DNA from: Isurus oxyrinchus
Taxonomy: Eukaryota
Length of the DNA: 64,000 nt
Assembly: GCA_026770705.1 (NCBI GenBank)
Contig: JANJGN010000385.1
Coordinates: 186,001-250,000 of the forward strand
Direction of reading: 5' to 3'
Positions 10,204-49,416 of this stretch are shown piece after piece. Position 1 is the stretch's first letter. Each line of letters starts with the position of its first letter. Below the pieces are notes generated by a model. It saw only the letters and a list, made by a program, of their open reading frames with translations, was not told where the DNA came from and ran no database searches. The position numbers were made by a program, and so were the translations under genes.

Positions 10204-10485
10204 ACACACCACAGAATCTCTCAATTAATTCTCTTGATATAATTAACGCTTCATCGATCAATATAATTGAGGGGAATTCTGCAGTGATAATCTGCTCTGT
10301 CGAGAGCTTCCCAGCTTCTAACCTGACGTGGCGACATCTTAATGTCCCAATGAACAGAACAAGTTCCAACAATGAGCTGTGGTTGGTGATTCCTCACGTT
10401 ACATCCAGGGACACGGGACACTATCAGTGTGCGGCAGAGAAGGAACATGGAGCAGTGGAGGGATTTATAACCATCTCTGTGGAAC
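10204..10485 (+). CDS. Siglec-like gene A, membrane-proximal C2-set Ig exon 4 (domain 5)
   Basis: 282 nt, the same length as the paralogous exon 49135-49416. YTPQNL..EGNSAVIICSVESFPASNLTW..DTGHYQCAAEKEHG..ISVE, donor C|gtgagt. The acceptor (ctgatcag) is weak. Confidence 0.85.
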
Positions 10486-10524
10486 GTGAGTTACACAGAA
10501 TTGAACATTCTTGTGTTATTAGCT

Positions 10525-11560
10525 CATGGGATGTGGGCATTGTTGACAAGACCAGAAATTATTGCCCATCTGTAACTGCCCCTTGAGAAGGTGGTGGTGA
10601 GCTGCCTTCTTTAACCACTGCAGTCCATGTGGTGTAGGCACACCCACAGTGCTGTTAGGGAGGGAGTTCCAGGATTTTGTCCCAGTGATGGTGAAGGAAC
10701 GGCCGATATAGTTCCAAGTCACAGGGCAGACCACCACCTCAAGTTCACCTCCAAATCACACACCACACTGACTTGGAACTGTCTTGGTGGAAGAGGTTAA
10801 GAGTTTGGAAGGTGCTGTCGAAGGAGCCTTGGTGAGTTGCTGCAGTGCATCTTGTAGATGGTGCACACTGCTGCCATTGTGTGCCAGTGGTGGAGGATAT
10901 GAATGTTTATGCTGGTGGATGGGCTGTCGATCAAACAAGCTGCTCCTGGATGGTGTTGAGGTTCTTGAGTGTTGTTGGAGCTGCGCTCATCCAGCCAAGT
11001 GGAGATTATTCCATCACACTCCTGACTTGTGCCTTGTCAATGGTGGACAGGCTTTGGGTGGTCAGGAGTTGAATTACTCACCACAGAGTTCCCAGCCTCT
11101 GACCCGCTCTTGTAGCCACATTATTTCCTGTTGCTGGGTTGTTGCCAGGGCCAATAGCCTTTGCTGTATCCAGTATCATCAGCTGATTCCTGATGTCACG
11201 TGGAGTCAATCGAATTGTCTGAAAGCTGACATCTGTGATGCTGGGACCCTCTGGAGGAGGCCGAGAAGGAGCATCCATTCAGCACTTCTGGCTGAACATG
11301 GTTGCCAATGCTTCAGCCTTGTCGTTTGCACTGATGTGCTGAGCTCCCCCATCATTAAGGATGGGGATATTTGTGGAGCATCCTCCTCCGGTTAGATCAT
11401 TAATTGTCCATCACCATTCATGACTGGATGTGGCAGGACTGCAGAGCTTAGATCTGACCTGTTGGTTGTGGGATCGCTTTGCTCTGTCTATAGCATGTTG
11501 TTTCCGCTGTTTGGCGTGTATGTAGTCCTGTGTGTCACCTCAGCAGCTTGGCACCTCTGT
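10525..11560 (-). mobile_element. CR1/L2-type LINE fragments
   Basis: Same family as 23030-24990 and 43730-45780, with shared nucleotide blocks in the ORF2 C-terminal region. Confidence 0.75.
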
Positions 11561-11749
11561 TATATGTGAATCCTCCTTATAGAAACCTGCATGTACATGG
11601 ATATTATCAATAAATATTACATAGATAAATGTTATTTGTATAGACCTTTCATGCATAGACAATATCACTTCACAAGTTCAGAATTACTACATGTACATAG
11701 GGAACCATTCTCAAACTGTACCGGAGTCATTCATTGGCTGATTTTACAG

Positions 11750-11846
11750 GGCGAGATTCCAATGAATGGAAAGCAGGATTGCTTGGAGCTGGAATCTGTT
11801 TGAGTGTTGGACTGAGTGGATTCTTCATCTTCAAGTGTGTGAGAAA
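11750..11846 (+). CDS. Siglec-like gene A, transmembrane exon (uncharged core)
   Basis: ttttacag| ... AA|gtaagt, 97 nt, phase 1-2. RRDSNEWKAGLLGAGICLSVGLSGFFIFKCVR. Homologous to the gene D TM exon. Confidence 0.85.
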
Positions 11847-12649
11847 GTAAGTGTGAAGGTTTAATTGGTTGTTTTCGAAAATGTTTTCTTCAAACTTCTC
11901 TCCTTATAGAAAGAACTTTCATTTCTATAGCACCTTTCACAACCCAGAACCCTTCACAGCCCCTGAAGAGTTTTGATGTTCACCTACTGTTTAACATCTC
12001 ATCCAACACTCAATGTTTCACAACTCAGACCTGTAACAGGCAGTGTTGACCCGGACCATAAGATACCTTGTGACCTACTGAGGATGTGAAAGGTGCTATA
12101 TAAATGAAAACCTTTCTTTTGTTAGTGAATGCAATCTCTTTCCTTTTTCCATGTTTCATTCACTCTCTCTTATCTCCACTAATGTTGGCCTTCTCATTCT
12201 CTCTCTCTCTCATTCACTCTCTCTCCAATCTCCACTAACGCTCTATTTCTCATTCTCTCTCTCATTCACTCTATCTCTTATCTCCACTAATGCTCTCCTT
12301 CTCATTCTCGCTCTCATTCACTCTCTCTCCTATCTCCACTAATGCTCTCCATCTCATTCTCTCTCTCGTCCTCTTACACAATGTTCAGTATCTCACATTT
12401 TTAAGGAGCGCTGAGCAACATCTGCTCCTTCAGAAGATCCACCTCAACACCTGGAGTGAGCAGTGAATTGAAACTCGCTCACCAACTGCTCAGCTTTACA
12501 CAGGAATCACGTCACAGAGTCAGGACACAAAGGGTTAACAGTTTGTTTACAACACAACACTAAGGCCCTACGTTTCAGTGAAAGGGTTTTCACAATTGTT
12601 CCCCAATTCCTGATTTTACTCACAGAGAAACATCAACCCTTTCTCATTA

Positions 12650-12750
12650 AATACACAGAGGGAGCAGCACAGGAAGAGGTCATTCAGCCCAAGCAGAGCG
12701 TGTGGGCAGTTCCTCCCCAGGCGAGTAGTCGGACAGGTCCTGGGTAAGTA
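12650..12750 (+). promoter_or_regulatory. Putative promoter and non-coding exon 1 of Siglec copy B
   Basis: ETS/PU.1-like cagttcctc at 12707-12715 and a strong donor TGG|gtaagt at 12744, upstream of the leader exon. Duplicated at 14795-14895. Confidence 0.5.
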
Positions 12751-14012
12751 ACGGAACGATTGGAATTCACTTCCACGACCAACACCATCCTTTGTTGATG
12801 TTGTGACTTTATAAAGACAGATTCCAATAACTGATGCCTTTGAAAGATTTCTACTGATTATTGAGATCTGGGTGTGAGGCTCAAGTCTGTTGTACAGAAC
12901 ATTTTTCTAGCTCAAGGGATGAGGGAAGAGCAGGGACATGAGCTTTGGGGTGTCCTGAGGTGGTGAAAGGCGATAAAGAAATGCAAGTCCTTCATTGTTT
13001 TACTTTCTTAAAGCCTTGTAACTCTCTGCAGAGCACATATCATCCCACAGAGAATGAAATTAGTCTGTGAAGACATTGTCTAAAAGCAGTTCTGATCTCT
13101 CGAGAGGTGTCGGACAAGAGGTGAGGTCTCGTTAACTCATTTCTCTTTCACAGCTTGAGAACCAATGAAATACCTGGGAGTGGGCAATGATCAGGAAATC
13201 TTACTTCCTCCTGTCACTTCTCCAAGGTAATATCATTGTCAGCTCGGACAGATTTATGGCTAATCATCTTTGTAAAACATAATTCTTATTGAGCTCTGAT
13301 TGGGAACAGATTCAGCAGTGAGCCAGTGTACAATCTCACACCAAGTCCCATTCACCCATCACCCCTGTGCTCACTGATATACACTGACTCCCTGTCTGAC
13401 AGCAGAATTGGTGGAGAGCAGAGGACTTTGAGGTTTGCATGGTTGGAGGAGAAAGTGATTGGAGAAGAGGAATGGAGGGAATGGAAATTGAGGATGAGAA
13501 TCTTAAACTCGAGGCTCTGCTGGACTGGGAGCCAGTGCAGGTCAGCGAGTGGCGGAAGGCGTGAGGTGTTGAGTTGAGAAACAGTGATAAATACTGGGGG
13601 ATGAAGTCTATCCTGATGCTTGGACTCCGATAGCAAAGGAATGAAATTTGTGTCTTTTGCTGATTTTAGTCAGAATTTCCCATGAAGACAACACAGCAGC
13701 TCCTAGAATAGACAGGCTGTTCAGTGTCACACTTCCTGTCCATTCTCACCTTGCTAGATACTTCAATAAGGGAGCAAGATAACTGAAAGAGAGAAGGAAG
13801 GTAAAACTGTCTTTGTGTAAAGGTGTCAATATTCAGTTTGTATATTTGTCTTTCTCTCGACACATGCAGAGCTCAGGCTAGAGGCGCTTTGTTAGTGTGT
13901 TTCACAGGGTCTGCTGGAGTAGGGTCAGTGCTGAGCTTGGGGACAAGTCAGTCTACAATGCTGCATCGGAATCAACAATACAACAATATGGGGTTTGGAT
14001 CAGAAATAATCC

Positions 14013-14165
14013 CTTAGACAATGAGGATCCAAAGAGATTCATTAAACAATGAGGATCCAAAGAGATTCCTTAGACAATGAGGATCCAAAAAGATTCCTTA
14101 GACATGAGGATCCAAAAAGATTCCTTAGACAATGAGGATCCAAAGAGATTCCTTTGACAATGAAC
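14013..14165. repeat. 28-bp tandem repeat, ~5.5 copies (paralog of 1495-1720)
   Basis: Same unit, fewer copies. Confidence 0.9.
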
Positions 14166-14794
14166 ATACAAAGTGCACCAATGATAGTGAATCAGATTAG
14201 CCAATCAGCTGTGTTGAAGAGCAGACAGGAATGTTAGGCTAATTAGTGATTCATGACGGTGACAATGGGGGGAGTTCTGACGGCTCCTAATCCATTGTCC
14301 TGTCTTGTAAATCAGCACCTTAATACTGACCCTCCAACAGTGCAGCACTCCCTCAGTACTGATCCTCCAACAATGCAGCACTCCCTGATTAATGTCCCTC
14401 TGACAGTGCAGCACTCCCTCAGTACTGACCCTGAAACAGTGGAGATCTCCCTCAGTACTGACCTTACAATAGTGCAACACTCGCTCAGTAATGACCATCC
14501 GACAGTGCAGCACTTGCTCAGTACTGACACTGGGGAGTTTCAGTCTACTCTGTGGGGCAGACGTCCCCTGAATCGGGTCTTGAATCCCACAACATTCTGA
14601 CCCCCTGAATTTGGCTGTGAAACCCACTGACCCACAGGAGAAACTCCTGGTCAATGACTGTCCACCTGTGAGCAGAAATATCACCACAGGGTCAGGACAC
14701 AAAGTTCACCAACATCTCAAAACATGAGCTGCTCTGTCACTTTGATCCAACTTCCTCATTTTGTCTCACAGAGACACATCAACCCTTTCTCACT

Positions 14795-14895
14795 AAATAC
14801 ACAGAGGGGGCAGCACAGGAAGAGGTCATTCAGCCCAAGCAGAGCGTGTGGGCAGTTCCTCCCCAGGCGAGCAGTCGGACAGGTCCTGGGTAAGT
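14795..14895 (+). promoter_or_regulatory. Putative promoter and non-coding exon 1 of Siglec copy C
   Basis: cagttcctc at 14853-14861 and donor gtaagt at 14890. Confidence 0.5.
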
Positions 14896-15339
14896 AACGG
14901 AACGATTGGAATTCACTTCCACGACCAACACCGTCCTTTGTTGATGTTGTGACTTTATAAAGACAGATTCCAATGATTGATGCCTTTGAAAGATTTCTAC
15001 TGGTTATTGACATCTGGATGTGAGTCTCAGGTCTGTTGTACAGAACATCTTTCTAGCTCAAGGGATGAGGGAAGTGCAGAGACATGAGCTTTGGGGCATC
15101 CTGAGGAGGTGAAAGGTGCTATAGAAATGCAAATCCTTCATTGATTTTCTTTCTTAAAGTCTTGTAACTCTCTGCAGAGCACCTATCATCCCACAGAGAA
15201 TCAAATTCTTCTGTGAAGATATTGTCTAAAAGCTGTTCTGATCTCTTGAAAGCTGTCGGACAATAGGTGAAGTCTCATTAACTCCTTTCTCTTTCACAGC
15301 TTGAGAGTGAGAAGTGGATGGACTATCTGGGAGTGGACA

Positions 15340-15379
15340 ATGATCGGGAAATCTTACTTCCTCCTGTCACTTCTCCAAG
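15340..15379 (+). CDS. Siglec copy C, leader exon (MIGKSYFLLSLLQ)
   Basis: Coding sequence identical to 288-327, donor gtaat at 15380. Confidence 0.7.
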
Positions 15380-16070
15380 GTAATATCATCGTCAGTATGG
15401 ACAGATTTATGTTTAACAGTTTTTGTAAAAGATCATTCTTATCTCTTTATCTCTGTAACGTCCTGCAACTCAACCAAACAACTTCCCAGATCTCTGTGTT
15501 ACTCCAATTCCGGCCTCTTGACCATCCCCCGATTCCCATCACTCCAATAGTGGCGGCCGTGCCTTCAGCTGCCTGGGGCCTGAGCTCTGGAATTCACTCC
15601 CTAAACCTCGGCGATGGAGGAGATCAGAGGGTTTCATTTTACTGAGAATCACCACGACCACATCACAGCTGCAGTCAGAATAGACAGAGAGTCCAGCCCT
15701 CACACTTCCTGCACAGTTTCACCATAGCAACCACAATAAGGAAGTAAAATAACTGAAAGTTAAACCGAAGCCAAACCAGTCGGTGTAGAGAGATGAGATG
15801 TTTACACAGTTTCCCTGTGTATCTTGTAGACACTGTGTTGGGTGGAAGACTGGCTTCAGTAAACAGAGTCCTGAGGACCATGAGCCAATGTAGAATGAAC
15901 TTGTCCACTCCTGTGTCCAGGATTCTCTTCCATCCATTGTGAAACCTTGGGGAGTTCCTTGTGTGTCCTGTAGATGGTCCTCACTGCAGCCACTGTGCCC
16001 CAGTGATGGAGGGGGTGGATATCGAGTCTAGTGGATTGACAAACCATCCAGAGTTAAATATTGATATTTA

Positions 16071-16101
16071 TATTACCCTGTAACCCGGCTTCACGGTTCT
16101 G
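16071..16101 (+). pseudogene. Siglec copy C, 3' remnant of deleted V-set exon
   Basis: Sequence matching ~3415-3421 (gatattt) is joined to sequence matching 3770-3800 (tattaccctg...). About 350 bp, including the acceptor, is missing. Confidence 0.92.
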
Positions 16102-16564
16102 GTAAGTGCTGCGTTATAATTACTCAACAATTCACATCCAACACTCAATGGGAAATAACACTAACTGTGACGTTTACATATTAACACAAAACACAGCTTA
16201 TTATAACACACTGTCTGATTCTCAATAACCTGGTGATCGCTTCCAGTTCAGTCCAAAAGCAACCTCTAATACTCACTTTAATATCAATGATGAAAAGCAT
16301 TAACTGTATTATCAGGTTATCCATTCCCATCAATCTCTCCTGTCCTGTTTAAAAGTCTGACGTATCGATAAAAGAAAGATGTGCATTTCTGCAGCGCAAT
16401 TTACCACCTCAGGAGGATCCAAATCCCTTCACAGCCAATGAAATTATTCCTGAATTGTAGTCACAGATGTTAAACACAGCAGGCAGTTTGTGCACAGCAA
16501 GATCCAACAAACCACAAGGTGATAAATCACCCAGATCACTGAGGAAATGAGAAGCCAGTGAACT

Positions 16565-16710
16565 CAAACCTCTGGTCTGATGAAGAGTCATACGGACTCG
16601 AAACGTTAACCCTGTCTTCCTCTCCACTGATACTGTCAGACCTGCTGAGTCTTTCCAGCAATTTTTGTTTTGGTTTCAGATTTCCAGCATCCGCAGTATT
16701 CTGCTTTTAA
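16565..16710 (+). mobile_element. Short Penelope-like repeat with hammerhead-type motif
   Basis: CTGATGA-A-GAGTC-atacg-GACTC-GAAAC-GTT at 16577-16607. Related copies at ~21535, 28560 and 54606. Confidence 0.55.
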
Positions 16711-16960
16711 CTCCAATCTCTGGTCTGAGCCTCTTCTCTCATCCAGTGTTCTCAATTCACATGTCTCGGAGTGAACGTGTATTAAGCTGAGAGACAGAAA
16801 CACTACTGCCAAAGAGCAAGAAAATCTTTCCTGATCATTGTAACCTCTCAGTTCTGATATCATCCTTGTAAAAGTGCTTTCTCTTGTGGGACTGTGGTTT
16901 CTCTTTGAACTGATGCTTCACATTATATTTCTCTAAAAGGATCCATTCTCTGTCTGTTAG

Positions 16961-17257
16961 ATTTCACAGATAAACCCACGATATTCCCTGCTGAAATTAT
17001 TGCAGGAAAGCGTGTGGATGTAAGCTGCACCTTCAACACAACGTGCAATGGAACAGCAGCACCTGTCTTAACCTGGGACACTCCCACTGACGTACCTGGA
17101 TCAGTCTCAAACACTGTAACTCAGCATGGTGTCACTCTGACCTATACTTCTGTTCTGACCCTGATCCCATCACTCAAACACCATGGACACACTCTCAGCT
17201 GCAGAGTGAGATATCCATCTTTTTCATCGGAGCGGACCCTCGTACTAACTGTGCAAG
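16961..17257 (+). CDS. Siglec copy C, intact C2-set exon (paralog of 4201-4497)
   Basis: 297 nt, open frame, tgttag| and AG|gtaatt both intact. Confidence 0.75.
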
Positions 17258-17580
17258 GTAATTACAGACACCCTTCATTCTACATCAGCACTCCCTCAGC
17301 GCTGACCCTCTGACAGTGCAGCCCGTTCTCAGTGTCCACATTCTCATGCCTCTCAAAGTGCTTCAAAGTCGATAGAAGTTAATTGATCTTTATTTGATTA
17401 TTGCTGAATGAAGAGACAAGCTGTCTAAACTTTACATCTCGCACACACCATTCTCCATGGCAACACCTCCACCTATCAGAGACCACTTGCCAACCAATCA
17501 GCACTCTCTTCCCATTAAGTATAAATTGTTGTTCACTTTCTGTTGGTAATCCTGTGAACGGGCTTCTTGATTCCTGCCCT

Positions 17581-17733
17581 GACATCTTAATGTCCCAATG
17601 AACAGAACAACTTCCAACAATGAGCTGTGGTTAGTGATTCCTCACATTACATCCAGGGACACTGGAGACTATCAGTGTGTGGCAGAGAATGAACATGGAG
17701 CAGTGGAGGGATTCATAACCATCACTGTGGAAC
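17581..17733 (+). pseudogene. Siglec copy C, 5'-truncated membrane-proximal Ig exon
   Basis: Matches 10333-10485. The 5' part and acceptor are replaced by repeat sequence. Confidence 0.9.
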
Positions 17734-19411
17734 GTGAGTGTACACAGACTTCAACATCTCTCGCAGATTCGAACACGACACAAACACCCTCAAACATACA
17801 CATCTAAGTAGACACATGCAGACACACATATATGACCACACAGAAAGACACACTCACACACAAACACACTAACACACACTCCCCTGTGGGCTACCTGACC
17901 TCCCTCAGTACTGCCCTGGAGAGTTGGCCTGAATTCTGGGATTTGTGTTCCCATTCATATTTATGCAAGAATATGGAAATTACAAAGTCTATTACAGACA
18001 GTCAGATGCATAGAGACACTCACAGATACTCTCTGCCTCTCCAACTCTCTCTCTCCCTTTAAGAAGCTTCCTGAAAGCTCACCCTTCGAACAATCACCGG
18101 TCCCAAATCCTCCTTATCTGATTTGTGTGATTTTCTTTGTGTATTTGAGAGTAAGAGAGAGGTGGAGAGGTTTAGGAGGAGAATTCCTGTTGGTGAAAAG
18201 CTTACATCATGTTCTCACCTTTCCAGTGCCCATATTTTACATGATGTCCAATGTCCTTGTTCATAATGGGAATTGCCTATGTAAACATCACGCTGTAGTT
18301 ACAGTCTCCTACCAGTGGTGGCATTGTAGCACTTAATCCTTGTGTTTCCCAGCTTTTCAAGCAACTCCACTTCCCAGTTTGCTCCACAAGCTGTGAGTTC
18401 ATTGGAATTCAATTATTTCTCAAACGGTAGATTTGATGTCATTTTATTGAAAACTTCCTCAGTGCCTCCCTGAAGGGTTGACACTCTCTGGGAAGCAGGA
18501 ATAGGCTGGATGTTGGGGAGTTCATCTTTTCCCAAAGAGTAGTGATCCTCGGGAATGTGCTGTCAGTGGGTGTGGTGGTTGCTGATTCTCTGTCGCCTTC
18601 AAGAGGGATCTGGAGTCATTACTGACTGGGGGAGAGATCATGGAAACGGAGAATGATACAGCACAGGAGGAGGCCATTCAGTCCATTGTGCCTGTGCCAG
18701 GTCTTTCAATGTTCTATCCAATCAGATCCAATAACCACCACTCCAATTTGCCACCATCTTCCTCCTTTAAGTATTTATCCAATTTCCCTTTTGAAAGTTC
18801 CTATTGAATCTGCTTCCACCGCCCTTTCAGGCAGCACCTTCCAGATCACAACAACTCGCTCTGTCAAAACAAATTCTCCTCATCTCCCCCTCCGGTTCGT
18901 CAATCTGTGTCCCTCTGGTTACCGAGCCTCCTGCCCCTTAAGTACATTGATACTGTTCACCTCAACCACTCCCTGTGGGAGCGAGTTCCACATTCTCCCC
19001 TCTCTCTGGGTAAAGATTGGAACTGTTTATTAAGTGAGGCCTGTAAGTCCGTGGGGGAGTCCATCTCGATCCTGCCCGATTCGTACACGCGTCCGAGATG
19101 GATTTCCACCCTGCACTAAACGTTTCCAGAATTTTCTACAGCACAATCCTGTACACAACGATTGGGAGAAACATTGGACAGGGAGTCCAACAGCACAATG
19201 ATCCATTCTCACCAATGTTCCACGCTAAGGGGAAAGTTCCGATTGTCCACTCTTAGAGTGTTTACAATGAAAACATTCATTCCACATTGAATCCCAGTGG
19301 ATGGGTCAATATTACAGCAAATGTTGCAGTGATATGAAGCTTGATTGTTCAGCCAGAGTGAGAGATTGAAAGCGGAGAGTCAGTGATGATTTCTTTCTGT
19401 GTGTTCTCTAG

Positions 19412-19551
19412 ACAGTGGAGGAGAGATTCTGCACGTGATCCTGATCCTGGGAATACGAGCTGTGATATTCCTTGTGGCTGTGGTTATCACTATCGCTGGA
19501 GTCTGTGTCTGGGAGAGACAAACAGTGAAAGCAAGTCGACAGACTGTTTGA
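19412..19551 (+). CDS. Activating-type TM exon with intramembrane Arg and short Tyr-free tail
   Basis: ttctctag|, phase 1: xSGGEILHVILILGIRAVIFLVAVVITIAGVCVWERQTVKASRQTV*. Arg codon at 19456-19458. Confidence 0.8.
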
Positions 19552-19669
19552 AGCTTTGTACAGCAACAATCTGGTCAGTCAGTGCGGACAAATAACGTGT
19601 GATGTTGGGTTAAGTTGTAATGAAACTGGTCAGTGTCCTGGTTAGAATCACCTTCGTATCAGAGAGGCA

Positions 19670-20260
19670 TTCCAGCACAGTGGGAGCCCATTCAGCCCAT
19701 TGAGTCCATGCTGTCTCTCTGTAGAGCAATACAGTCAGTCCCATTTCCCCCGCTCTATCCCCGTATCCCTGCAAGTTTATTTCCCCTCAAGTGTCCAACC
19801 AATTTCCTTTTGAAATCGTTCGTCTCCGCTTCCACCATCCTCGTAGGCAGCGAGTTCCAGCTCATTACCACTCGCTGTGTAAAAAAGTTACTCCTCACAT
19901 CCCCCCTCTGCCCAAAACCTTCAATCTGTGTCCCCCAGTCCTTGTCCCATCAGCTAATGGCAACAGCTTCTCTTTGTCTGCCTTATCTAAACCCATCATC
20001 ATCTTGTACACCTCGATCAGATCCCCCCTCAATCTCCTTTGCTCCAAGGAGAACAACCCCAGCTTCTCCAACCCAACCTTGTAGCTAAAATCCCTCATCC
20101 CTGGACCCATTCTGCTCAATCTCCTCCCCACCCTCTCAAGGACCCTCACTTCCTTCCCAAATTGAGGAGACCAGAACTGGACACAATACTCTAGTTGTCA
20201 CCTAAACAGAGCTTTATAAATGTTCAGCATAACCTCCCTGTGTTTGTACTCAATCCCTCG
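19670..20260 (-). mobile_element. Young CR1-type LINE 3' end
   Basis: Reverse-complement match to 8097-8560. Confidence 0.88.
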
Positions 20261-20289: not shown

Positions 20290-20655
20290 CACAAACAGCA
20301 ATTTCCAAGCGGACTCCCATCAGCAGACAGAGTGCAATGAAACATCGGCATGCCTGCTTCTTAATGTACGGAGAGAAACCTGGAACGAGAGATTCTCCTT
20401 CTTCTCCTCAGCAAGCTGAAACTTTTCCTTATACCTGGTGCTCCCCAGTCCTGCTGTGTGGACACATCATAACCACGGCATTGTCTGGCTGTGTGCAGCC
20501 AACATGGTCGAATAGGAATGAACAGAAATGTGACATTGCTAAACTCTGTTCTCTGATTGGAATGTGCTTTCTGAATGCTGCACCTTTTTCATGCTGCAAT
20601 AGATTGTAAGAAGCATTTGGGTTATGAATAAAATTACATTGATTAACACAAGTGA
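20290..20655 (+). other. Probable terminal exon / 3'UTR of the activating-type Siglec
   Basis: Acceptor ttccatcag ends at 20289. 20485-20655 is homologous to the gene D 3'UTR (45780-45950, -). AATAAA at 20627-20632. Confidence 0.6.
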
Positions 20656-20974: not shown

Positions 20975-21530
20975 GACAGCGGAGCACTCCCTCAGTACTG
21001 ACCCTCCAACAGTGCTGCACTCCCTCAGTTCAGACCCTCCTACAGTGCAGCACTCCCTCAGATCAGACCCTCCGACAATGCAGCACTCCCTCAGTTCAAA
21101 CCCTCCGACAGTGCAGCACTCCCTCAGTTCAGACCCTCCGACTTTGCAGCACTCCCTCAGTTCAAACCCTCAGACAGTGCAGCACTCCCTCAGTTCAGAA
21201 CCTCCGACAGTGCAGCACTCTCTCAGTTCAGACCCTCCGACAGTGCAGCACTCCCTCATTTCAGACCCTCCGACAGTGCAGCACTCCCTCAGTTCAGGCC
21301 TCCGACAGTGCAGCACTCCTTCAGTTCAGACCCTCCGACAGTGCAGTACTCCCTCAGTTCAAACCATCCGACAGTGCAGCACTCCCTCAGTTCAAACCCT
21401 CCGACAGTGCAGCTCTCCCTCAGTTCAGAGCCTCCGACAGTGCAGCACTCCCTCAGTTCAGACCCTCCGACAGTGCAGCACTCCCTCAGTACTGAACCTC
21501 CGACAGTGCCGCACTACCTCAGTACTTCTC
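20975..21530. repeat. 30-bp minisatellite, variant unit (cagttcagaccctccgacagtgcagcactccct)
   Basis: About 18 tandem units. Confidence 0.93.
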
Positions 21531-31645: not shown

Positions 31646-31846
31646 TGGCTGAGGAGGGATTGAAAACAAGAATGAGAATTTCAGGGGAAACGACAGAAGG
31701 AAATGATGTTAAATTCATAGAGGGCGACAATATTAAAGGCACGAACATAATAATATCAAACTGCGGAAGTGACCAGTCTATCTGGGTGGTAGACGTAGAC
31801 TCATGTGCAAGAAACACCTCACCCAGAGGGACATCTCTTAGCTTAC

Positions 31847-31924: not shown

Positions 31925-32008
31925 CTGGGAGCTTCCCATCTCTGCCTGTCTCTTCTGATCTTCTGGCTCTGCTTTGATGCTTTGGTTTGTAACTAGAGGA
32001 GCTTCCTG

Positions 32009-35019: not shown

Positions 35020-36500
35020 CTCTCTCTATCACACTCTTCTGCTCTATCTCTCTCTCTCACACACACACACATTCTCTCTCTAACACTCACAATCTCTCTC
35101 TATCACACTCTTCTGCTCTATCTCTCTCTCTCACACACACACATTCTCTCTCTAACACTCACAATCTTTCTCTATCACACTCTTCTGCTCTCTCTCTCTC
35201 TCTCTCTCACACACACATTCTCTCTCTAACACTCACAATCTCTCTCTATCACACTCTTCTGCTCTATCTCTCTCTCTCTCTCACACACACATTCTCTCTC
35301 TAACACTCACAATCTCTCTCTATCACACTCTTCTGCTCTATCTCTCTCTCACACACACACACATTCTCTCTCTAACACTCACAATCTCTCTCTATCACAC
35401 TCTTCTGCTCTATCTCTCTCTCACACACACAGACATTCTCTCTCTAACACTCACAATCTCTCTCTATCGCACTCTTCTGCTCTATCTCTCTCTCTCACAC
35501 ACACACATTCTCTCTCTAACACTCACAATCTCTCTCTATCGCACTCTTCTGCTCTATCTCTTTCTCTCACACACACACATTCTCTCTCTAACACTCACAA
35601 TCTCTCTCTATCACACTCCTCTGCTCTATCTCTCTCTCACACACACACACATTCTCTCTCTAACACTCACAATCTCTCTCTATCACACTCCTCTACTCTA
35701 TCTCTCTCTCTCTCTCACACACACATTCTCTCTCTAACACTCACAATCTCTCTCTATCGCACTCTTCTGCTCTATCTCTCTCTCTCACACACACACATTC
35801 TCTCTCTAACACTCACAATCTCTCTCTATCACACTCTTCTGCTCTCTCTCTCTCTCTCTCACACACATTCTCTCTCTAACACTGACAATCTCTCTCTATC
35901 GCACTCTTCTGCTCTCTCTCTCTCTCACACACACACATTCTCTCTCAAACACTCACAATCTCTCTCTATCACACTCTTCTGCTCTATCTCTCTCTCTCTC
36001 ACACACACATTCTCTCTCTGACACTGACAATCTCTCTCTATCGCACTCTTCTGCTCTCTCTCTCTCTCTCACATACACATTCTCTCTGTCTCCCTCCCTC
36101 AAATACATTCTCTCTCTCTCTCAGACACAAACACTCTCTCACACACTCGCACACTTTCCCTAAAACTAACACAATCTCTCTTTCTGTCAAGCACACACTC
36201 TCTCTCACACACACACACTCTCTCTCTCAGACACACACATTCTCTCTCTCTCAAACATTTAACATTTCTCTTCATCTCGATCTTCTGCTGTCTCTCTCTT
36301 TCTCTCCCTCGCACACACACACACACTCTCTGTCACAAACACACGCTCTCTCCCACACACTCTCTCTCACACACTCTCACATGCACACTCTCTCCCTCAT
36401 ATACAAACACTCGCCCTCACACATGCACACTCTCTATCTCTTTTTCTCTCTCACACAGTCTCTCTGTCTCTCTCTCTCTCTCAGACACTCTCTCTCTCTC
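35020..36500. repeat. Compound (CT)/(CA) ~63-bp tandem repeat (mirrored at ~53060-54150)
   Basis: Unit tctctctctaacactcacaatctctctctatcacactcttctgctcta(tc)n(ac)n. Confidence 0.9.
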
Positions 36501-37813
36501 TGATACAGAATGTTTTAAGACCTGCTCATGATTTCAGCTCAAAACCCAGGTAGATTCTCCCCAGTGAGGGAGTGGTGAGGGAGTGCTGCACTGTCAGAGG
36601 ATCAGTACTGAGGGCGTGCTGCACTGTCAGAGGGTATGTACTGAGGGAGTGCTGCACTGTCGGAGGATCAGTACTGAACACAATGTCCATTCAGAACAGC
36701 TCGGTCCCCGATCAGAGAAACAGCCTCAGACAGAACCAACTGACGCTGGAATCCATACAATTCATCAACGTGTTGGGAGTTAGTTTGATGTCGGAGATGG
36801 AGTGTTACTGGGAAGGAGGGAACCCGTCAGGATGAACAGCTCGATGTATGACAAGGAAAGGATGAGCTAAGAGGGGTTGGCCACGGACAGACGGAGCATG
36901 TGAAGACTCAACAAGCTAATGGCAGGTGAAGAGCTGGAAAGGTGTCTTTTCAACACAAGGTTTAGACACAGAACTCGATGTTTGATCGGGTATTTCAAAC
37001 CAGAGAAACTCTTTACAGGGTGAATGGACCTTGTCAATAATCCATCCAGCCAACCTCGCCTGGAGATTAGTCCAATATTAGACACTAAACCGAGTCCCCC
37101 GTCTGCCCTCTCGGGCGGGTGTGAAAGATCCCACAGCCACTATTTGGAGGAAGAGCAGGGGGGAGATCTCCCCGGTGTCCTGGCACCAATATTTATCCCT
37201 CAACCAACATCACCAAAAACAGGTGATCACATTGCTGTTTGTGGGAGCTTGCTGTGCGCTAATTGGCTGCTGCGTTTCCTACATTACAACAGTAACCACA
37301 CTTCGAAAAAAGGGTTCACTCAACTGTAAAGTGTTCTGGGACATCCAGAGACCATGCTGTACAGAAGAGATTTGACAGGAGCAGCAAGTGTTTTACTTAC
37401 AGGAGAATGAGTCCCCAGGGTTGTAGAGTCAATCCTGTCAGATGAATGTCTAACTGGAGACACTTCAGGGAGCTGATCTAATTCTGGAAATGTTCAGTTT
37501 AGCAGGATCGGAGGAGAGATGATCTTCCTCTCCTGACTGCATCGGACACGAGGTGAACTGGCTCTGGGAGGAGGGTCAGTGTTAACCCAGTTTTTCTGTG
37601 TTTGAGGGAGATGTGAAACTGGGGATGTCACGTGGTTTTTTGGTGTGGTAACTCCATGTCTTTATTTGGTGCAGCACTCATTTAGTTCATGTCGTTGTTT
37701 CAATGCTACAAAACCACAACGCATTCTGGACTATTTCTGCCTGACCTGCTGTCAGATACACAGTCTGACAGGGAGGCGGAAAAGTGGTCCCTAGCAACGT
37801 GTGTAACTGTGAA

Positions 37814-40800
37814 NNNNNNNNNNNNNNNNNNNNNNNNNNNNNNNNNNNNNNNNNNNNNNNNNNNNNNNNNNNNNNNNNNNNNNNNNNNNNNNNNNNNNNN
37901 NNNNNNNNNNNNNNNNNNNNNNNNNNNNNNNNNNNNNNNNNNNNNNNNNNNNNNNNNNNNNNNNNNNNNNNNNNNNNNNNNNNNNNNNNNNNNNNNNNNN
38001 NCACTCTTTTGCACAAACACTCTTTCACGCACACACATGCACACACACACGCACACAAACGCACAAACTCACTCACACACAAACCCTCACACACACACAG
38101 ACACAAACATTAGCACACACACACACACACTCACACATGCACACATACTCTCAAACACACACTGTTTTGCACAAACACTTTCTCTTTCACACACACACAT
38201 ACACACACACTCTCTCTCTCACACACATGTTCTCTCTCACTCCCTGTCTCAAACACACAATCTCCCCCTCCCTCAAACACTCACACCATCTCTTTCTCGC
38301 ACACTCCCTCTCTCAAACACACACACCCTCTTTCTCAAACACACACACACACACGATCTCACACACACACTCTCACATACACAAACACTCTCTCACAGAC
38401 ACACACTCTGTTTTGCACACACACTATCTCACACGCACATTCTCTCTATCTTTCTCTCTCACACATAAATTCTTTCTCACTCTCACAGACGTTCTCTTTC
38501 TCTCACACACACTCTCTCTCTCACACACAAGCTACCTCCCTCTCTCATGCACACACACTCTACCTCTCTTTTGCTCTCTCACACATACACACTCTCAGTC
38601 TCTCACACATACATTGTCTCTCTCTCTCACATAAACGCACTCTCTCTCTCTGAGATGGAAGGTTGGGATTTTGAGACCGTCTCAAGGTTTCAGCTTAAAA
38701 TGCGGACGGACTCTTCCCAGTGAGGGAGTGCTGCACTGTCAGAGGGTCAGTACTGAGAGAGTGCTGCACTGTTGGAGGGTTAGCACTGAGGGAGTGCTGC
38801 ACTTCCAGAGGGTCGGTACTGAGGGAGAGCTGCACTCCCAGAGGGTCAGTGCTGAGGGAGTGCTGCACTCCCAGAGGGTCAATACTGAAGGAGTGCTGCA
38901 CTCTCAAAGGGTCAATGCTGAGGGAGTGCTGCACTGTCAGAGGGTGGGCACTGAGGGAATGCTGCTCTGTCAGACCTGCCATATTTCAGATGACATTTGA
39001 AATTAGCAACATGCCTCATGTATAATTATATATCATCAGCTCAAAATAAATAGATTATTCCTGTACGTTTCACTTTACTGTAAATTGTTTGCAGTTTCAT
39101 TTCCTTAGAAACCAGGCTTGTGTGATCACTATTTTTAAATAACGTTAATAATAAAGATGCAACAATCCACACGCACACATGTACACACACACACACATTC
39201 ACTCACAAGGGTACATAGACAGACACACACTCACNNNNNNNNNNNNNNNNNNNNNNNNNNNNNNNNNNNNNNNNNNNNNNNNNNNNNNNNNNNNNNNNNN
39301 NNNNNNNNNNNNNNNNNNNNNNNNNNNNNNNNNNNNNNNNNNNNNNNNNNNNNNNNNNNNNNNNNNNNNNNNNNNNNTTAGAGTCCAATAAAAATTTAAA
39401 AGAATATATGATTAATACAATTGCTTGTCTTTGAGGTGTAGATTGTTGACGTTTGCAGCTGTTCAAGGTTAATTGGTTTCCTGTGGCATCCTGGTGGTGA
39501 TTTGATTCAGATTTGCACTTTGTTGAAGATGCGCTGTTAGCTTCAGAAAGAGAGAGAGAGAGAGAGAGAATTTCTGCTCTTTTCCAGCAGTGTTTTTGAG
39601 TGACTGCCATCTTTCTTTTTCCTCCTACTTTCTCTTATATCTGCTTGACAGAACCTGTTGTTAAACTCCTGTCTGTATATTCCCAAAGGGAATTCGATCA
39701 GCATGTCTTGCAATCATTGTCGTAGACCAAGTAATCCCTTTTTTGATCTTTGCATCTCTGAAACATTTGATGCATTTCAAGATATAAATCAACAGGAGAT
39801 GGAGGCATTTCATCCTCCACAAGAGGTTTTGAATGACTGATGAATATCTGCATGGTGAGCAGTTCCCATTAGCTTGATAGACCTACAGTGATCAGAGTCC
39901 AGCGCTTTGCATTTTTAATGGAGCCCCTGTTTCAGGTGGACCCTGACACACCTCAGTGAGAACTTTCATGCAACATGTCTGTAGTGCAATTCATTTGAAG
40001 CTTTCCAGAGAAGTGATCAAGTTTGCAGTATCAGCAATCAGGTGACTCGTGACAGCCATTTTTGATCAATGCCTAATCTTGTACTTTTGAAAAACAGGTC
40101 TCCTTTAAACAGTTCAATACATTTTTGGCTCGTTGGTTAAGTTGAAGGAAGCTCTGTTATGACATAACAGATGGTAAATGCTGAGCTGTTCAAATCCTGG
40201 AGGGAAACTTGAAACAACTGTCACAACTAATTTCCAACTTGTATGTTTTGAGATGTGGGCTTTGAATTCAGTAGTAATGAGATTAAGATGTTTAAGAGGT
40301 AATTATGGTTGGTTGAAAAAAAGGGTTTAAAATATATTTTCCCCCAAATGCAATTTCCAAAGCAAGTCTCTTTGATTGTTAAGAATGAACCAATTAAACC
40401 ACGTTTGGTGGAGTCAAAGAAAGAGTAAGTTTATTAGTTACCTAACTGGAGGAAAAATAATNNNNNNNNNNNNNNNNNNNNNNNNNNNNNNNNNNNNNNN
40501 NNNNNNNNNNNNNNNNNNNNNNNNNNNNNNNNNNNNNNNNNNNNNNNNNNNNNNNNNNNNNNNNNNNNNNNNNNNNNNNNNNNNNNNNNNNNNNNNNNNN
40601 NNNNNNNNNNNNNNNNNNNNNNNNNNNNNNNNNNNNNNNNNNNNNNNNNNNNNNNNNNNNNNNNNNNNNNNNNNNNNNNNNNNNNNNNNNNNNNNNNNNN
40701 NNNNNNNNNNNNNNNNNNNNNNNNNNNNNNNNNNNNNNNNNNNNNNNNNNNNNNNNNNNNNNNNNNNATAATTATAGAGTCCAATAAAAAATTAAAAGAG

Positions 40801-41965
40801 TCGTTTGCTTGTACTACAGCGTAGGCTGTGAAGTTTGAAGCTGTTTTAAATTAGTTGGTTTTCTGTAGATTCCTGTATTTTATCTGGCTCAGACTTGCAC
40901 ATTGTTGAAGACATTCTGTTAGCTTCAGACAGAGAGAGAGAGAGAGGGAGAAATCATTTCTGCTCTTTTCCAGCAGTGTTTGTGGAAGACTGCCATATTT
41001 CTTTTTCCCCTCCTTTCTCTGAAATCTGCTTGGCAGAACCATTTGTTAAACTCCTGTCTGTATATCCCTGAAGTCAATTCGATCAGCTTGTTTTTCATTC
41101 ATTGTTATAGACCAAGTATTCCCATTTTTTTATCTTTGCATCTCTGAAACCTTTGATGCATTTCAAGATATAAATCAACAGGAGACGGGGGTATTGTATC
41201 CTCCACAGGGGGTTTTGAATGGTTGATGATTATCCGCTTGGTGAGCAGTTCCCAATGTTTTGATTGAACTACAGCTGATCAAAGTCCAGCACTTTACATT
41301 TTAATGCCTTCCTTTTAAGAGTGTCTCTATTTGAAGTGGACCCTGACACACCCCAGGCGTGAACTTCCATGCAACAGGTCTGCAGTGCAATTCATTTGAA
41401 CCTTTCCAGAGAAGTGATCAACTTCACAGTATCAGCAATCAGGTGACTTGTGTCAGCCATTTTTGATCTGTGTACAATCTTGTATTTCTTTGAAAAACAG
41501 GTCGCTTTTAGACAGTTCAATATGTCTTTGGTCTGTTAGTTAAGTTGTAGGAAGCTCTTAATCGCAGTTTGTTGTCATTGGGATATTGTCTTTGTGTGTG
41601 TGTTTGTGTGTGTGAGTGAGTGTGTGAGTGAATGTGTGTGTGTGAGTGAATGTGTGTGTGTGTGTGAATGTGTGTGTTTGTGTCTGTCTGNNNNNNNNNN
41701 NNNNNNNNNNNNNNNNNNNNNNNNNNNNNNNNNNNNNNNNNNNNNNNNNNNNNNNNNNNNNNNNNNNNNNNNNNNNNNNNNNNNNNNNNNNNNNNNNNNN
41801 NNNNNNNNNNNNNNNNNNNNNNNNNNNNNNNNNNNNNNNNNNNNNNNNNNNNNNNNNNNNNNNNNNNNNNNNNNNNNNNNNNNNNNNNNNNNNNNNNNNN
41901 NNNNNNNNNNNNNNNNNNNNNNNNNNNNNNNNNNNNNNNNNNNNNNNNNNNNNNNNNNNNNNNNN
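37814..41965. other. Four assembly gaps: 37814-38001, 39235-39377, 40462-40767, 41691-41965
   Basis: Runs of N. Confidence 0.99.
39378..41570. repeat. Two diverged direct copies of a ~0.8-1 kb non-coding element (39378-40200 and 40768-41570), possibly LTR-derived
   Basis: Colinear blocks, for example tttcaagatataaatcaacaggaga near 39775 and at 41161, with many substitutions. Confidence 0.75.
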
Positions 41966-45970: not shown

Positions 45971-46219
45971 TCAGTTTTTCTGGAACCTGATCTGTGCGTC
46001 TTCCGTGTCCTCGCTCCTGTGCACAGTCCTGTCACCGCCGGGCAGCTTTGAAAAGTTGATGTTGGCGTAGAAAAGCTCGTCGGGTTTGTCGGGGTTCCCA
46101 TGTCCAACATCGCCTCCCACTGGACCTTCAGAGAGACCCCGGGGAGCTGGGGTCTCCCCCTCGCTAGTTGTGTTTCTGGTTGTGTTCCGGGGCTCAGTAA
46201 TCAGCACGTTCTGTTTACC
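45971..46219 (-). CDS. Siglec-like gene D, terminal cytoplasmic exon with ITIM
   Basis: ctctgtag|, phase 0: GKQNVLITEP...DELFYANINFSK...EDTEDAQIRFQKN*. ITIM LFYANI at 46058-46075. Confidence 0.88.
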   Translation of the reverse strand, partial: GKQNVLITEPRNTTRNTTSEGETPAPRGLSEGPVGGDVGHGNPDKPDELFYANINFSKLPGGDRTVHRSEDTEDAQIRFQKN

Positions 46220-47267
46220 CTACAGAGAAATAGAAACAGAAGACATCCTCACATCACTTACTGGCACTGATAGGGTTAAGTTATTCTGCAGCCTCGTTAC
46301 TGTCAGTCATGTCTCAGTGTGTTTAACCCTCTTTTTCACTCTCTTTCTCTGTCTCCTTTTTTTCAATCTCTTTCTCTGTCTCTCTTTCTCTCTCTCTCTC
46401 TTGCTTTCTCTCTCTATTTATCATGTAATCTCTCTCGCTATCGCAGACCTGAGTCTTGAAGTCCGATGTTACCATCCCAATCATGAGATTTGTGCCCCAT
46501 TATTCACAAACACAGACACACAAAGAACCTCACGCCAATGAAGGAATTTTATTGAAGGGCGACACTGCTACAGTGTTGGAAATGTGGCCATGGGACCAGA
46601 TAAGAGGGTAAACATGGTCAGCATTATACAACTATTCTGAAAGAGGCACCTCGAACACTGCCATGTTCTCTCAGTGCTCTCTGCTGACAGTGCAGCACTC
46701 CCTCGGAACTGCCCCTTCAAGAGGGCAGCACCCCTTGAAAATGGACTCTTTGACAGTGCAGCACTCACTCAGTACTGTCCTCAGTACTGACCATCCGACA
46801 GTGCAGCACTCCCTCAGTACTGACCCTCCGACAGTGCAGCACTCCCTCAGTACTGACCGTCCGACAGTCCAGCACTCCCTCAGTACTGACCCTATGACAG
46901 CGCAGCACTCCCTCAGTACTGACCCTCTGACAGTCTAGCTCTCCCTCAGTACAGACCCTCTGACAGTGCAACACTCCCTCAGTACTGACCTTCTGACACT
47001 CCAGCACTCCCTCAGCACAGACCCTAGGACAGTGCAGCACTCCCTCACTACTGACATCAGGTGCCTTGTCATTATTGCATTCAGGTTTCTGGTCAAAGAG
47101 CGAGTGATGGAGGGAAGAGGGGGAGGGAGCGAGAGACAATGCTACCTACTGAGCCATATCTGACTCCACAGGTAGATATCTGTGGGTAACCTGGCTGGGA
47201 ATCTGGGACATGTGTTGTCTACACACTGAGATTGAAGCTTTGGAGTGAGTGTAAACAGCTCCTGTAC

Positions 47268-47349
47268 CTGGTGCTTCACAGAGAGTGGACTGGGGGTCAA
47301 TGAAATGTCTCTGGTCCCTGAAACTTTCTCCTCCATCGCTGTCTTTCTC
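47268..47349 (-). CDS. Siglec-like gene D, cytoplasmic exon 1
   Basis: ttattgcag| ... CAG|gtacag, 82 nt, phase 2-0. KRKTAMEEKVSGTRDISLTPSPLSVKHQ links the TM and ITIM exons in frame. Confidence 0.8.
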
Positions 47350-48227
47350 CTGCAATAACACAATATCACACTGTGGTTATCATATAGCAGAGAGTCAGTG
47401 CAGCACAGACACAGAGCCCAGTGTAACCTTACACCAACGACTGGACTGTCTCTAGTTCCAATAAGGGATATCAGCGTGACATCACTATAATGGAAGTGTG
47501 TCATGTGATCCAATCTTAGTTTGACTTTTGCTTTGAGCAGAACACACACTCACAGCTCTGATGCCTTCAATCTTTCTCCATATGTATAACTGTTCTCGTG
47601 CCGAGTCTTGATAAACAAATCATTAACATTCTCACCCAATCCCTGTGAGCGATTGGTGCTTTGTTTCTTGTACAATAAATAAGCCTAAGGTATAATATCA
47701 TTATAATGACACGCCATATCTTTGACCCCCCCTCCACCCCTGCTCTTCCCCCCATAGCCCTTCAAATGTTCCCCCTTCAAGTATTTATCCAATTCCCCTT
47801 TTGAAAGATCCTATTAAATCTGCTTCCAGCGCCCTTTCAGGCAGCACCTTCCAGATCACAGCGACTGATTATTATTCATCTGGATAACGGGCAATGAAAA
47901 ACACTGTCTGGATCGTAAGGGACAAAAGAGACCAGTTACGGAGAGGCATCTAGCGCTTAACACAAGGGAAACAATCACCGACTTAAGGAAAGAACATTGA
48001 AGCAAATGTTTATCCCGGAGTAATCGTGCAGAGTGAGGAATCTCTGGGTCTCGTGATTGTTTACCTGGATACAGGACAATGAAAGGTTCTCTCCGGATCA
48101 GAGTGGACACAGGGATCAGTTACGGAGAGGGACCTGGTGCTGATCCCAAGGGAAACAATCACCGACTTCAGGAAAGAACATTGAAGCAAATGTTTATATT
48201 AAAATCAAGTTAAATCTTCAGACTTAC

Positions 48228-48324
48228 TTTCTCACACAGATGAAGATGAAGATTCCAGCCAGGAAAACACTCAACATGATCCCAGCCGTGAACAATCCTA
48301 CTGTCCATTTACTGGAGTCTCTAC
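48228..48324 (-). CDS. Siglec-like gene D, transmembrane exon (uncharged)
   Basis: 97 nt, CRDSSKWTVGLFTAGIMLSVFLAGIFIFICVR, donor AA|gtaagt. Confidence 0.88.
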
Positions 48325-49134
48325 CTGTAAAAACAGCCATTAATTACTGCACTACAGGTTTACAATGATGCTCCGATGTATCTCGAGAAGCGATACACTC
48401 ACTCAGTGTTTAAATACTCATTCTCGGGCAATGCTGACATTTATTGTCCATCCCTAGTTTCCCCTTGAGAAGGTGGTGGGGGGTCTTCCTCCTGAACCAC
48501 TGGTTTGTCCCAAACTGGGAGACCAGTTCAGAGGGCAGGTAAGAGTTAACCATGTTGGTGTCTGAGACTGGAGTCACATCCACATCGAGACATGCTTCCC
48601 TCCCTCAAGGGTATGTAGTCTCTACACATGTAACAACCAACCTCACTGAAATAATCGACTATCAGGTCATTATCACACGGTGGTTTGCGGGATCTTGCTG
48701 TGCACAAATCAGTACCTGTGTTTCCTACATTTCAACAGTGAGCTCACTTCGATAATGCTTCACTGGCTGTTGAATGTTTAGTAATTTCTAAGCAATTTAT
48801 GAATACAGGTATTGCATTTCAACATGTAACATTTATATATAATATTTATCAATTAAAGAATGAGAAGTTCAGCAATTAAAAGGGTTGTTCAGGACAGTTA
48901 GAGAGAGAAAGGTCGTCAAGTACGGAGATTGGAAACGAAGACCTGACAGCCTTGTCCTCACAACCGTTGAAGGAGAAACTGAGAGCAAAAACAGAAAGGG
49001 AGAGGAAAAATTGGATGTGTGGATAACGTGGACTGAGCGAGGATTGAAGAAAACTGGATTAAAAACAACACGATCCCAATGGCTCCACGGAGACCACGGA
49101 GACAACAAACAAACAAATGTATCTCCACACTCAC

Positions 49135-49416
49135 ATTCCACAGTGATGGTTATGAACCCCTCCACTGCTCCATGTTCATTCTCTGCCACACACTGATAGT
49201 CTCCAGTGTCCCTGGATGTAACGTGAGGAATCACCAACCACAGCTCATTGTTGGAACTTGTTCTGTTCATTGGGACATTAAGATGTCGCCACGTCAGGTT
49301 AGAAGCTGGGAAGCTCTTGACAGAGCAGATTATCACTGCAGAATTCCACTCAATTATATTGATTGATGAAGCGTAAATCATATTAAGCGAAGTAAATGAG
49401 AGATCCTGTGGTGCAT
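49135..49416 (-). CDS. Siglec-like gene D, membrane-proximal C2-set Ig exon (no upstream exons found in window)
   Basis: ttttag| ... T|gtgagt, 282 nt, ~93% identical to 10204-10485. Confidence 0.85.

Follow-up and report, generated by a model that had tools for sequence, protein, structure and literature searches.

A probable shark family of Siglec-like receptors with activating-type and inhibitory-type ends, as read from a rearranged gene cluster of Isurus oxyrinchus

Can a single immunoglobulin (Ig) exon that recurs within one shark gene cluster be the common part of a paired system of activating and inhibitory Siglec-like receptors? This question is raised by a stretch of 64,000 nt from Isurus oxyrinchus (assembly GCA_026770705.1, contig JANJGN010000385.1, positions 186,001 to 250,000), which we call the window and number from its first letter. 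It holds exons of several receptor genes: genes A and C on the plus strand, gene D on the minus strand, and gene E, represented by one isolated exon. In the original prediction, a near-identical membrane-proximal (stalk) Ig exon leads to different signaling ends: in gene D to a neutral transmembrane (TM) segment and a tail with an immunoreceptor tyrosine-based inhibitory motif (ITIM), and in gene C to a TM segment with a buried arginine and a short tail. The paired design is borne out at the level of the family, as gene models of other sharks carry both ends, and breaks down in the window, where gene C has neither a V-set exon nor the shared exon and gene D is headless. On balance, we think it probable that these genes belong to a large shark Siglec-like multigene family, of which the window holds rearranged, partly broken copies.

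The family would be assembled from phase-1 modules: a leader, a Siglec V-set domain, a first C2 domain (C2-1), a repeatable stalk Ig domain and a TM/tail cassette, of which there are several kinds. Each exon served as a query of its own, and reading frames across the joins were checked by script. A tblastn inventory with 15 shark relatives gave 14 exon places in the window and no further Ig, TM or tail exons there; all Ig exons are of phase 1-1, with AG/GT splice sites and consistent phases. The Siglec character of the cluster is best seen in the V-set exon of gene A (3432-3800, plus strand; AG/GT, phase 1-1), which passes the Pfam cut-offs for Ig_CD22 and V-set. The 18 best matches of this exon among solved structures are all Siglecs, with Siglec-5 at the top (E 2e-14), and further solved matches include Siglec-8, CD33, Siglec-10, Siglec-7, MAG, sialoadhesin and Siglec-15. 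It keeps the B-strand cysteine (GSCVQIP) and the E-strand cysteine (GDCSLII), and its YFFRIE aligns on the YFFRVE of Siglec-5, and likewise on Siglec-8, including the sialic-acid-binding F-strand arginine. In the window, a V-set with this arginine is present only in gene A. By its sequence, the exon is of Siglec type.

The remaining exons of gene A lie on the same strand. A leader exon copy (249-327, 94% identical to 15301-15379) is found 5′ of the gene. The V-set exon is followed by an open C2-1 exon (4201-4497, phase 1-1; Pfam C2-set_2; 80% to the shark protein P0011), by two open C2 exons of the subfamily of the 'MAG-like' protein P0073, both of phase 1-1 (8645-8932, 63% to P0073 residues 129-230; 9441-9698, 63–67% to P0073, Pfam Ig_3/Ig_2), by the stalk exon (10204-10485) and by a TM exon (11750-11846) that ends in phase 2. 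This TM exon is homologous to that of gene D (74% over 212 nt including flanks) and is 72–78% identical to the TM segments of P0073 and P0069. The original prediction had rightly read it as neutral and had found no tail behind it; a candidate first cytoplasmic exon does follow at 12659-12742, with an acceptor and phase that match the TM exon and with tblastn matches to the tails of P0069 and P0073 (56%, E 2e-4 to 2e-3). A TAG at 12726-12728 cuts it short, giving a predicted tyrosine-free tail of ~24 residues. Gene A would be a five-Ig gene with a neutral TM segment and a tail shortened by a stop codon. The second cysteine of the CxxxPC motif in its V-set exon, which in Siglecs takes part in the interdomain disulfide, is replaced by arginine (CGT, 3509-3511); the close shark relatives all have cysteine here. 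Because the interdomain cysteine has changed and the tail is stopped, the sequence suggests that gene A is also decaying.

The exon at the center of the pairing idea occurs at three places in the window, although only two of these are full copies. The 282-nt stalk exon of gene A (10204-10485, plus strand) recurs in gene D at 49135-49416, on the minus strand, with 93.7% identity over 285 nt including acceptor and donor (aligned on 49413-49129). The near-identity proposed earlier was therefore borne out, the opposite strand of the gene D copy having gone unstated. Both full copies are of phase 1 and encode an open, 93-residue Ig domain that scores above the Pfam thresholds for Ig_3 and I-set. 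The third occurrence, in gene C (17581-17733, plus strand), retains only the 3′ 153 nt of the exon and its donor. 5′ of 17581, the sequence bears no relation to the exon and offers no AG acceptor, and the last codon before the match is an in-frame TGA. Over these 153 nt, the relic differs at 4 positions from the gene D copy and at 9 from the gene A copy.

How did the stalk exon come to be so alike in genes A and D? Since their stalk exons differ by 6.5% and their adjacent TM exons by 25%, the sequences indicate that the stalk exon probably spread between subfamilies by recent exon duplication or gene conversion. The ratio of nonsynonymous to synonymous substitution rates (dN/dS) between genes A and D is 0.76 in their stalk exons and about 0.9 in their TM exons, and the C2-1 exons of genes A and C differ by 6 nonsynonymous changes and 1 synonymous change; ratios near 1 are compatible with relaxed constraint on decaying copies. 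In other sharks, the stalk exon is repeated 4–9 times in tandem, namely in P0001 (zebra shark), P0002 (great white) and P0003 (bamboo shark). As this exon has been amplified up to nine times (P0001), likeness between stalk exons is uninformative about shared ligands. Some of these stalk-repeat models are annotated as 'hemicentin-1-like'.

Gene D reads largely as the original prediction had it, with the stalk exon leading to a neutral TM segment and an ITIM tail. On the minus strand, the open stalk exon (49135-49416, Pfam Ig_3/I-set) is followed by a neutral TM exon (48324-48228, 72% to the TM segment of P0011), a first cytoplasmic exon (47349-47268, RKTAMEEKVSG...; AG/GT, in phase with the TM exon) and a tail exon (45971-46219) that codes from 46219 to 45974, where we place the stop at 45973-45971. 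The tail is 84% identical to that of P0002 and 59% to that of P0011. All four exons have canonical splice sites and open frames, and the three exons behind the stalk join in frame. The tail carries the ITIM LFYANI (46075-46058) and a second, degenerate motif, TEDAQI (46006-45989), with GAC where the relatives have a tyrosine codon. In the 14.6 kb upstream of gene D (49416 to 64000, minus strand), the tblastn inventory found no leader, V or C2-1 exon. Gene D would be the 3′ part (stalk Ig, TM and ITIM tail) of an inhibitory-type gene. A large inverted duplication (28760-37810, plus strand, versus 63808-51257, minus strand; 94–98% identity) brackets gene D together with a region of assembly gaps, and it probably cut gene D off from its 5′ exons.

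The counterpart to this inhibitory end lies in gene C (plus strand). The Arg-TM exon (19412-19573) has a good acceptor, an arginine codon at 19456-19458, a stop at 19549-19551 and a donor after 19573. As previously described, it reads ILHVILILGI-R-... and ends in a short tyrosine-free tail: the arginine stands at position 11 in a hydrophobic stretch of about 29 residues, and the tail of 12 residues, without tyrosine, is closed by a stop in the same exon. The exon is 78% identical to the C-terminus of P0008 (tblastn). Upstream of it, gene C has a leader exon (15301-15379, phase 1) with its ATG at 15340, encoding MIGKSYFLLSLLQ, identical to the N-termini of P0011, P0055 and P0153. A V-exon relic follows, recognized by alignment to gene A and reduced to the final 31 nt with the donor (16070-16100); the acceptor and 348 nt, corresponding to 3422-3769 in gene A, are gone between 16069 and 16071. 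The C2-1 exon (16961-17257) is intact, 96% identical to that of gene A and 98% identical at the amino acid level to P0153. The leader, C2-1 and Arg-TM exons are all open in one frame, with the C2-1/Arg-TM junction in frame (...LTVQ-D-SGGEILHV...). Gene C would be an Arg-TM gene from which the V exon and half of the stalk exon have disappeared, the only possible product being a leader with one C2 domain and the Arg-TM segment.

Which Ig exon, then, is spliced to the Arg-TM exon? RNA reads were examined over 13750-19700, from four runs in the form of assembled contigs (3 samples, 3 studies), with contigs accepted at 95% identity or more. All four runs (X1, X2, X4 and X5) contain a GT..AG joint from 17255-17257 to 19410-19412, connecting the C2-1 exon to the Arg-TM exon. 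The Arg-TM exon is thus spliced to an Ig exon in RNA, which speaks for the original prediction, and its partner is C2-1 rather than the shared stalk exon, which does not: the stalk relic, placed by that prediction directly before the Arg-TM exon, is skipped. In the contigs, the Arg-TM exon runs up to its donor after 19573, and a loose contig end matches 20290-20319 exactly, leading into a 3′ untranslated exon that starts at 20290 and was traced as far as 20652. Because the stop codon lies only 22 nt before this exon junction, the message would be expected to escape nonsense-mediated decay. Two runs from 'organism B' have an extra T after 19554, past the stop, and four other differences in the Arg-TM exon, while the 'organism A' runs match the window here; this points to a paralog or a sister species as the source of the former.

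Other contigs describe the family more than this particular gene. One X4 contig has no mismatches over 224 nt to the C2-1 exon of gene C, where gene A differs at 7 of 294 positions. Paralog-derived contigs join the leader end at 15379 to a V-exon start one base off that of gene A, and the V-exon end at 16100 to 16960, with only 24–29 nt on the V side. Contigs over the stalk relic part from it at 17581 and have, like genes A and D, a G at both 17633 and 17646; they therefore do not come from the gene C copy. Among the RNA joints listed, none connects the leader to C2-1.

Two further exons of gene C bear on how the ends of these genes are put together. An open copy of the cytoplasmic-type exon of gene A lies upstream of the leader (14805-14888, plus strand, 98% identical to 12648-12742), and in X1, X4 and X5 it is spliced to the leader as a 5′ untranslated region (UTR) type of exon, by GT..AG joints from 14888/14889 to 15299/15301. 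Both the 12659-12742 and the 14805-14888 exons are homologous to the first cytoplasmic exon of P0069 and P0073, yet this exon type precedes the leader in RNA; it seems that a tail exon has come to serve as a 5′ exon, or that a 5′ exon has become a tail exon. Some joints go back from a leader or stalk exon into the 14805 exon (15377 to 14803 in X1 and X2; 17734 to 14805 in X5), which suggests either that transcripts run across leader cassettes in tandem or that paralogs have forms in which the TM exon is skipped. At the other end, the distal part of the last exon of gene C (20487-20652) is homologous to the 3′UTR of gene D (45945-45777, 78.7%), the preceding sequence in the same exons being unrelated; this may be a shared 3′UTR module of the family. 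We also considered whether the last exon of gene C is a decayed ITIM exon. Its first 197 nt (20290-20486) reached a local score of 17 against the coding tail of gene D, and 218 of 500 shuffles scored as well (shuffle mean 16.6), so that this idea is unsupported and homology is confined to the 3′UTR part.

Does the wider family combine both ends on one ectodomain? A full HMMER scan with the stalk exon gave 87 proteins below E 1e-30. The close relatives are RefSeq/GenBank models of Carcharodon, Cetorhinus, Stegostoma, Chiloscyllium, Scyliorhinus and Mustelus, named Siglec 8/10/12/13, hemicentin-1-like or MAG-like; the family is present in the automatic annotation of at least six shark species, with both forms in several sharks. 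In P0003 (XP_072409577.1, Chiloscyllium punctatum 'Siglec 13') and P0008 (XP_072326180.1, Scyliorhinus torazame 'Siglec 12'), a V domain and stalk repeats are followed by the Arg-TM segment directly after a stalk domain, while in P0152 (Scyliorhinus torazame 'PIGR-like') C2-1 is joined directly to the Arg-TM segment, as in gene C. Within the ILILGIRA(V/G)IF core, the arginine is invariant in these three proteins and the window, in line with the original expectation that it should be conserved among relatives, and the SRQTV-stop tail end is shared with P0008. A C-terminus search with P0008 gave 2 matches; being limited by its word index, it is not a census of Arg-TM proteins. In some relatives, the Arg-TM exon also has a histidine or aspartate near the outer end of the TM segment. 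P0011, P0055, P0075 and P0044 have the D-type TM segment with (I/L)LYANx and TEYA(Q/L/E)(I/L) motifs, whereas P0069, P0073 and P0118 have an A-type or other TM segment and YxN-rich tails. P0001 has nine stalk repeats; P0002 (XP_041037176.1, great white 'hemicentin-1-like') has four, no V domain and a D-type tail in which the ITIM tyrosine is a cysteine. Finally, in P0153 (great white 'Siglec 12, partial') the leader is joined directly to C2-1, behind which the 5′ half of a stalk exon is intact. The same stalk domain precedes both ITIM-type and Arg-TM ends in these models, from which it appears that activating-type and inhibitory-type forms both exist in the shark family.

By analogy with mammalian Siglecs, the inhibitory cassette (a neutral TM segment, then an ITIM and a TEYxxI-type motif) would recruit SHP phosphatases; as in KIR, LILR and Siglec-14/15/16, LFYANI would bind SHP-1/2 once phosphorylated. 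The activating-type cassette would be a single exon with a buried TM arginine, a tyrosine-free tail of 12 residues and a stop, signaling via a separate adaptor with an immunoreceptor tyrosine-based activation motif (ITAM). Judged by the same mammalian receptors, the arginine would pair with an aspartate of a dimeric ITAM adaptor, leading to activation. Lying about one third into the TM span, it resembles DAP12-coupled more than FcR-gamma-coupled receptors, which is only a resemblance. The polarity of signaling, the use of adaptors and the non-function of broken copies are all things that we infer.

If the family has both ends, do genes C and D form a pair? They have no exon in common: the Arg-TM copy has C2-1 only, the ITIM copy has the stalk exon only, and the near-identical exon is common to genes A and D, both with a neutral TM segment. 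Several observations nevertheless weigh against reading the window as broken copies. Immune receptors under diversifying selection would likewise show a dN/dS near 1, and few changes were available for counting. Gene D, whose exons are intact, could be driven by exons outside the window. The C2-1/Arg-TM splice holds for the exon type; near-identical paralogs are numerous in this family, and the contigs that carry the splice may derive from intact ones rather than from gene C. P0153, with its leader-to-C2-1 junction and 98% identity to gene C, raises the prospect that the V-less form may be a maintained product instead of a decaying one. Finally, with four gaps and a 9–12 kb inverted duplication, some of the truncations could be assembly errors. 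One may also picture a working pair in the window, in which gene C is a maintained V-less, single-C2 Arg-TM receptor and gene D is complete, with 5′ exons outside the window or reached by long-range splicing. The single open frame of leader, C2-1 and Arg-TM, the perfectly matching X4 contig, the junction in P0153 and the four intact exons of gene D with their canonical splice sites all agree with this. Set against them, gene C without a V-set cannot be a ligand-paired lectin and does not have the shared exon, no leader-to-C2-1 joint was seen among the RNA joints listed, and gene D has lost its second tyrosine motif and would have to splice over more than 14.6 kb, where the introns of the family in this region reach at most 4.2 kb; a working pair in the window is to us unlikely. 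We are equally doubtful of a narrower version, in which the V-less leader-C2-Arg-TM product is a maintained, DNA-encoded receptor of lamnid sharks that couples to ITAM adaptors and is not a lectin but, for example, competes with full-length Siglec-like receptors or partners them in signaling; in a wider sense, the family would then swap signaling ends via single phase-1 exons, with the stalk exon kept alike by conversion.

Could the breaks instead have been made by the assembly? In that case, a repetitive cluster was collapsed, mis-joined or misoriented, and the real genes are complete. There are four runs of N between 37814 and 41965 (37814-38001, 39235-39377, 40462-40767 and 41691-41965), with CA/TG microsatellites and AT-rich repeats beside them; the inverted duplication has its left arm stop exactly at the first of these runs, at 98% identity, and the P0153 contig breaks off within the stalk exon, three residues away from the breakpoint of gene C. 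However, every exon discussed here is at least 4 kb from any gap, no reading frame crosses one, and both the V deletion and the breakpoint of the stalk relic lie in gap-free sequence. Moreover, RNA or DNA contigs span 17274-17512, over the unusual junction region, and the arms of the duplication differ by 2–6% with indels, more than haplotypes normally would. Artefact as the general explanation is therefore very improbable in our eyes, although the linkage and orientation of gene D relative to genes A and C are uncertain across the gaps. The last alternative concerns the cassette rather than the copies: the Arg-TM end may not be activating, with the arginine serving assembly with other partners, retention or shedding, or with no suitable ITAM adaptor in sharks. 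The histidine or aspartate near the outer TM end in some relatives fits this idea, as does a 2014 survey in which an FcR-gamma homologue was not found in shark genomes (PMC4016189). That survey used fragmentary genomes, however, and one buried arginine with a tyrosine-free tail of 9–17 residues is strictly conserved over three shark orders, so we hold a non-activating role to be quite unlikely. In all other jawed vertebrates, a buried TM arginine with a short tyrosine-free tail is the signature of an adaptor-coupled receptor.

Our preferred reading, a large family represented here by rearranged and partly broken copies, invites comparison with the paired Siglecs of mammals (Siglec-5/-14 and Siglec-11/-16). 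There, too, one fast-evolving cluster has a Siglec V-set with the F-strand arginine, a form with an ITIM and a membrane-distal TEY-type motif, and a short-tailed counterpart whose TM segment contains a basic residue. In the mammalian pairs, the near-identical part is the ligand-binding, N-terminal V and C2, kept alike by gene conversion, whereas in the shark window it is the membrane-proximal stalk exon of two neutral-TM copies, and the Arg-TM copy has no V. Other sharks come closer: P0003 and P0008 have the same leader, V, C2-1 and stalk types and an Arg-TM exon at 51–78% identity (tblastn), the arginine being invariant, and they are complete, with V and 2–4 stalk domains before the Arg-TM segment, in contrast to gene C, which lacks V and skips its stalk relic. 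For the inhibitory end, the Stegostoma tigrinum 'Siglec 10' (P0011, XP_059497404.1) and P0002 match the TM, cytoplasmic and tail exons of gene D at 51–84%. P0011 has ILYANI and TEYALI where gene D has LFYANI and TEDAQI, and P0002 shows the opposite defect, with LLCANI and TEYAQI. P0153 differs from gene C in that the 5′ half of its stalk exon, which gene C has lost, is still there, up to the end of its contig. A V-less form is also known as CD33m, an isoform of human CD33 that likewise begins with a C2 domain and cannot bind sialic acid; it is produced by skipping of an exon and retains the ITIM tail, whereas gene C is V-less in its DNA and has the Arg-TM end. KIR, LILR/PIR, PILR, SIRP and the teleost NITR (PMC3533184) are likewise clustered and fast-evolving, with ITIM and charged-TM forms and many fragments, but they are other ectodomain families, none with a Siglec V-set.

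In a literature search, we found no paper on shark Siglec pairs or on this shark Siglec-like family. Work on teleosts describes fish as lacking CD33-related inhibitory Siglecs (PMC7226832), and a 2019 review of cartilaginous fish immunity leaves Siglecs unmentioned (PMC6795676). If the family-level interpretation is true, the on/off Siglec design either predates the mammalian CD33-related cluster by far or has arisen twice. A shark family with a Siglec-5/CD33-like V domain, ITIM and TEY tails and Arg-TM forms would also make it possible to ask on which ITAM adaptor early jawed vertebrates relied. To this claim the window itself adds little, as its copies are mostly broken and the family is already in the automatic annotation of sharks. 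Its own value is the picture of cluster turnover that it gives: exons have been deleted, the 3′ part of a gene lies without its head within an inverted duplication, a tail exon seems to have been taken over as a 5′ exon, and a stalk exon has stayed alike between subfamilies.

Beyond genes A, C and D, the cluster contains one more receptor exon and a number of repeats. An NCBIfam scan of the exons, with a prokaryote-oriented library, gave no match. The isolated V-set exon of gene E (55275-55571, plus strand) belongs to the P0073 subfamily (64% to P0073 residues 14-112); it is cut off in the F strand (...VYYTQF, then a stop) and scores below the Pfam V-set cut-off. Open reading frames following it (55531-56648) encode a zinc-knuckle-like CHHCHKKG and a weak gag-aspartyl-protease match below the Pfam cut-off, suggesting from the sequence that a retroelement probably inserted at the truncated exon. 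A 33-bp tandem repeat with the unit TGAGGGAGTGCTGCACTGTCAGAGGGTCAGTAC, open in several frames, is scattered over both strands across the cluster (6024-7110, 14318-14531, 20975-21526, 28053-28285, 30455-30732, 38721-38974, 46684-47055, 50359-50689, 52757-52987 and 61828-62105) and has very high contig depth in the RNA runs. A reverse-transcriptase fragment (4811-5128) lies inside the long intron of gene A. Lastly, a 460-bp interspersed element is present in opposite orientations at 8097-8553 and 20133-19676 (92% identical), one copy adjoining a C2 exon of gene A and the other following the TM exon of gene C.

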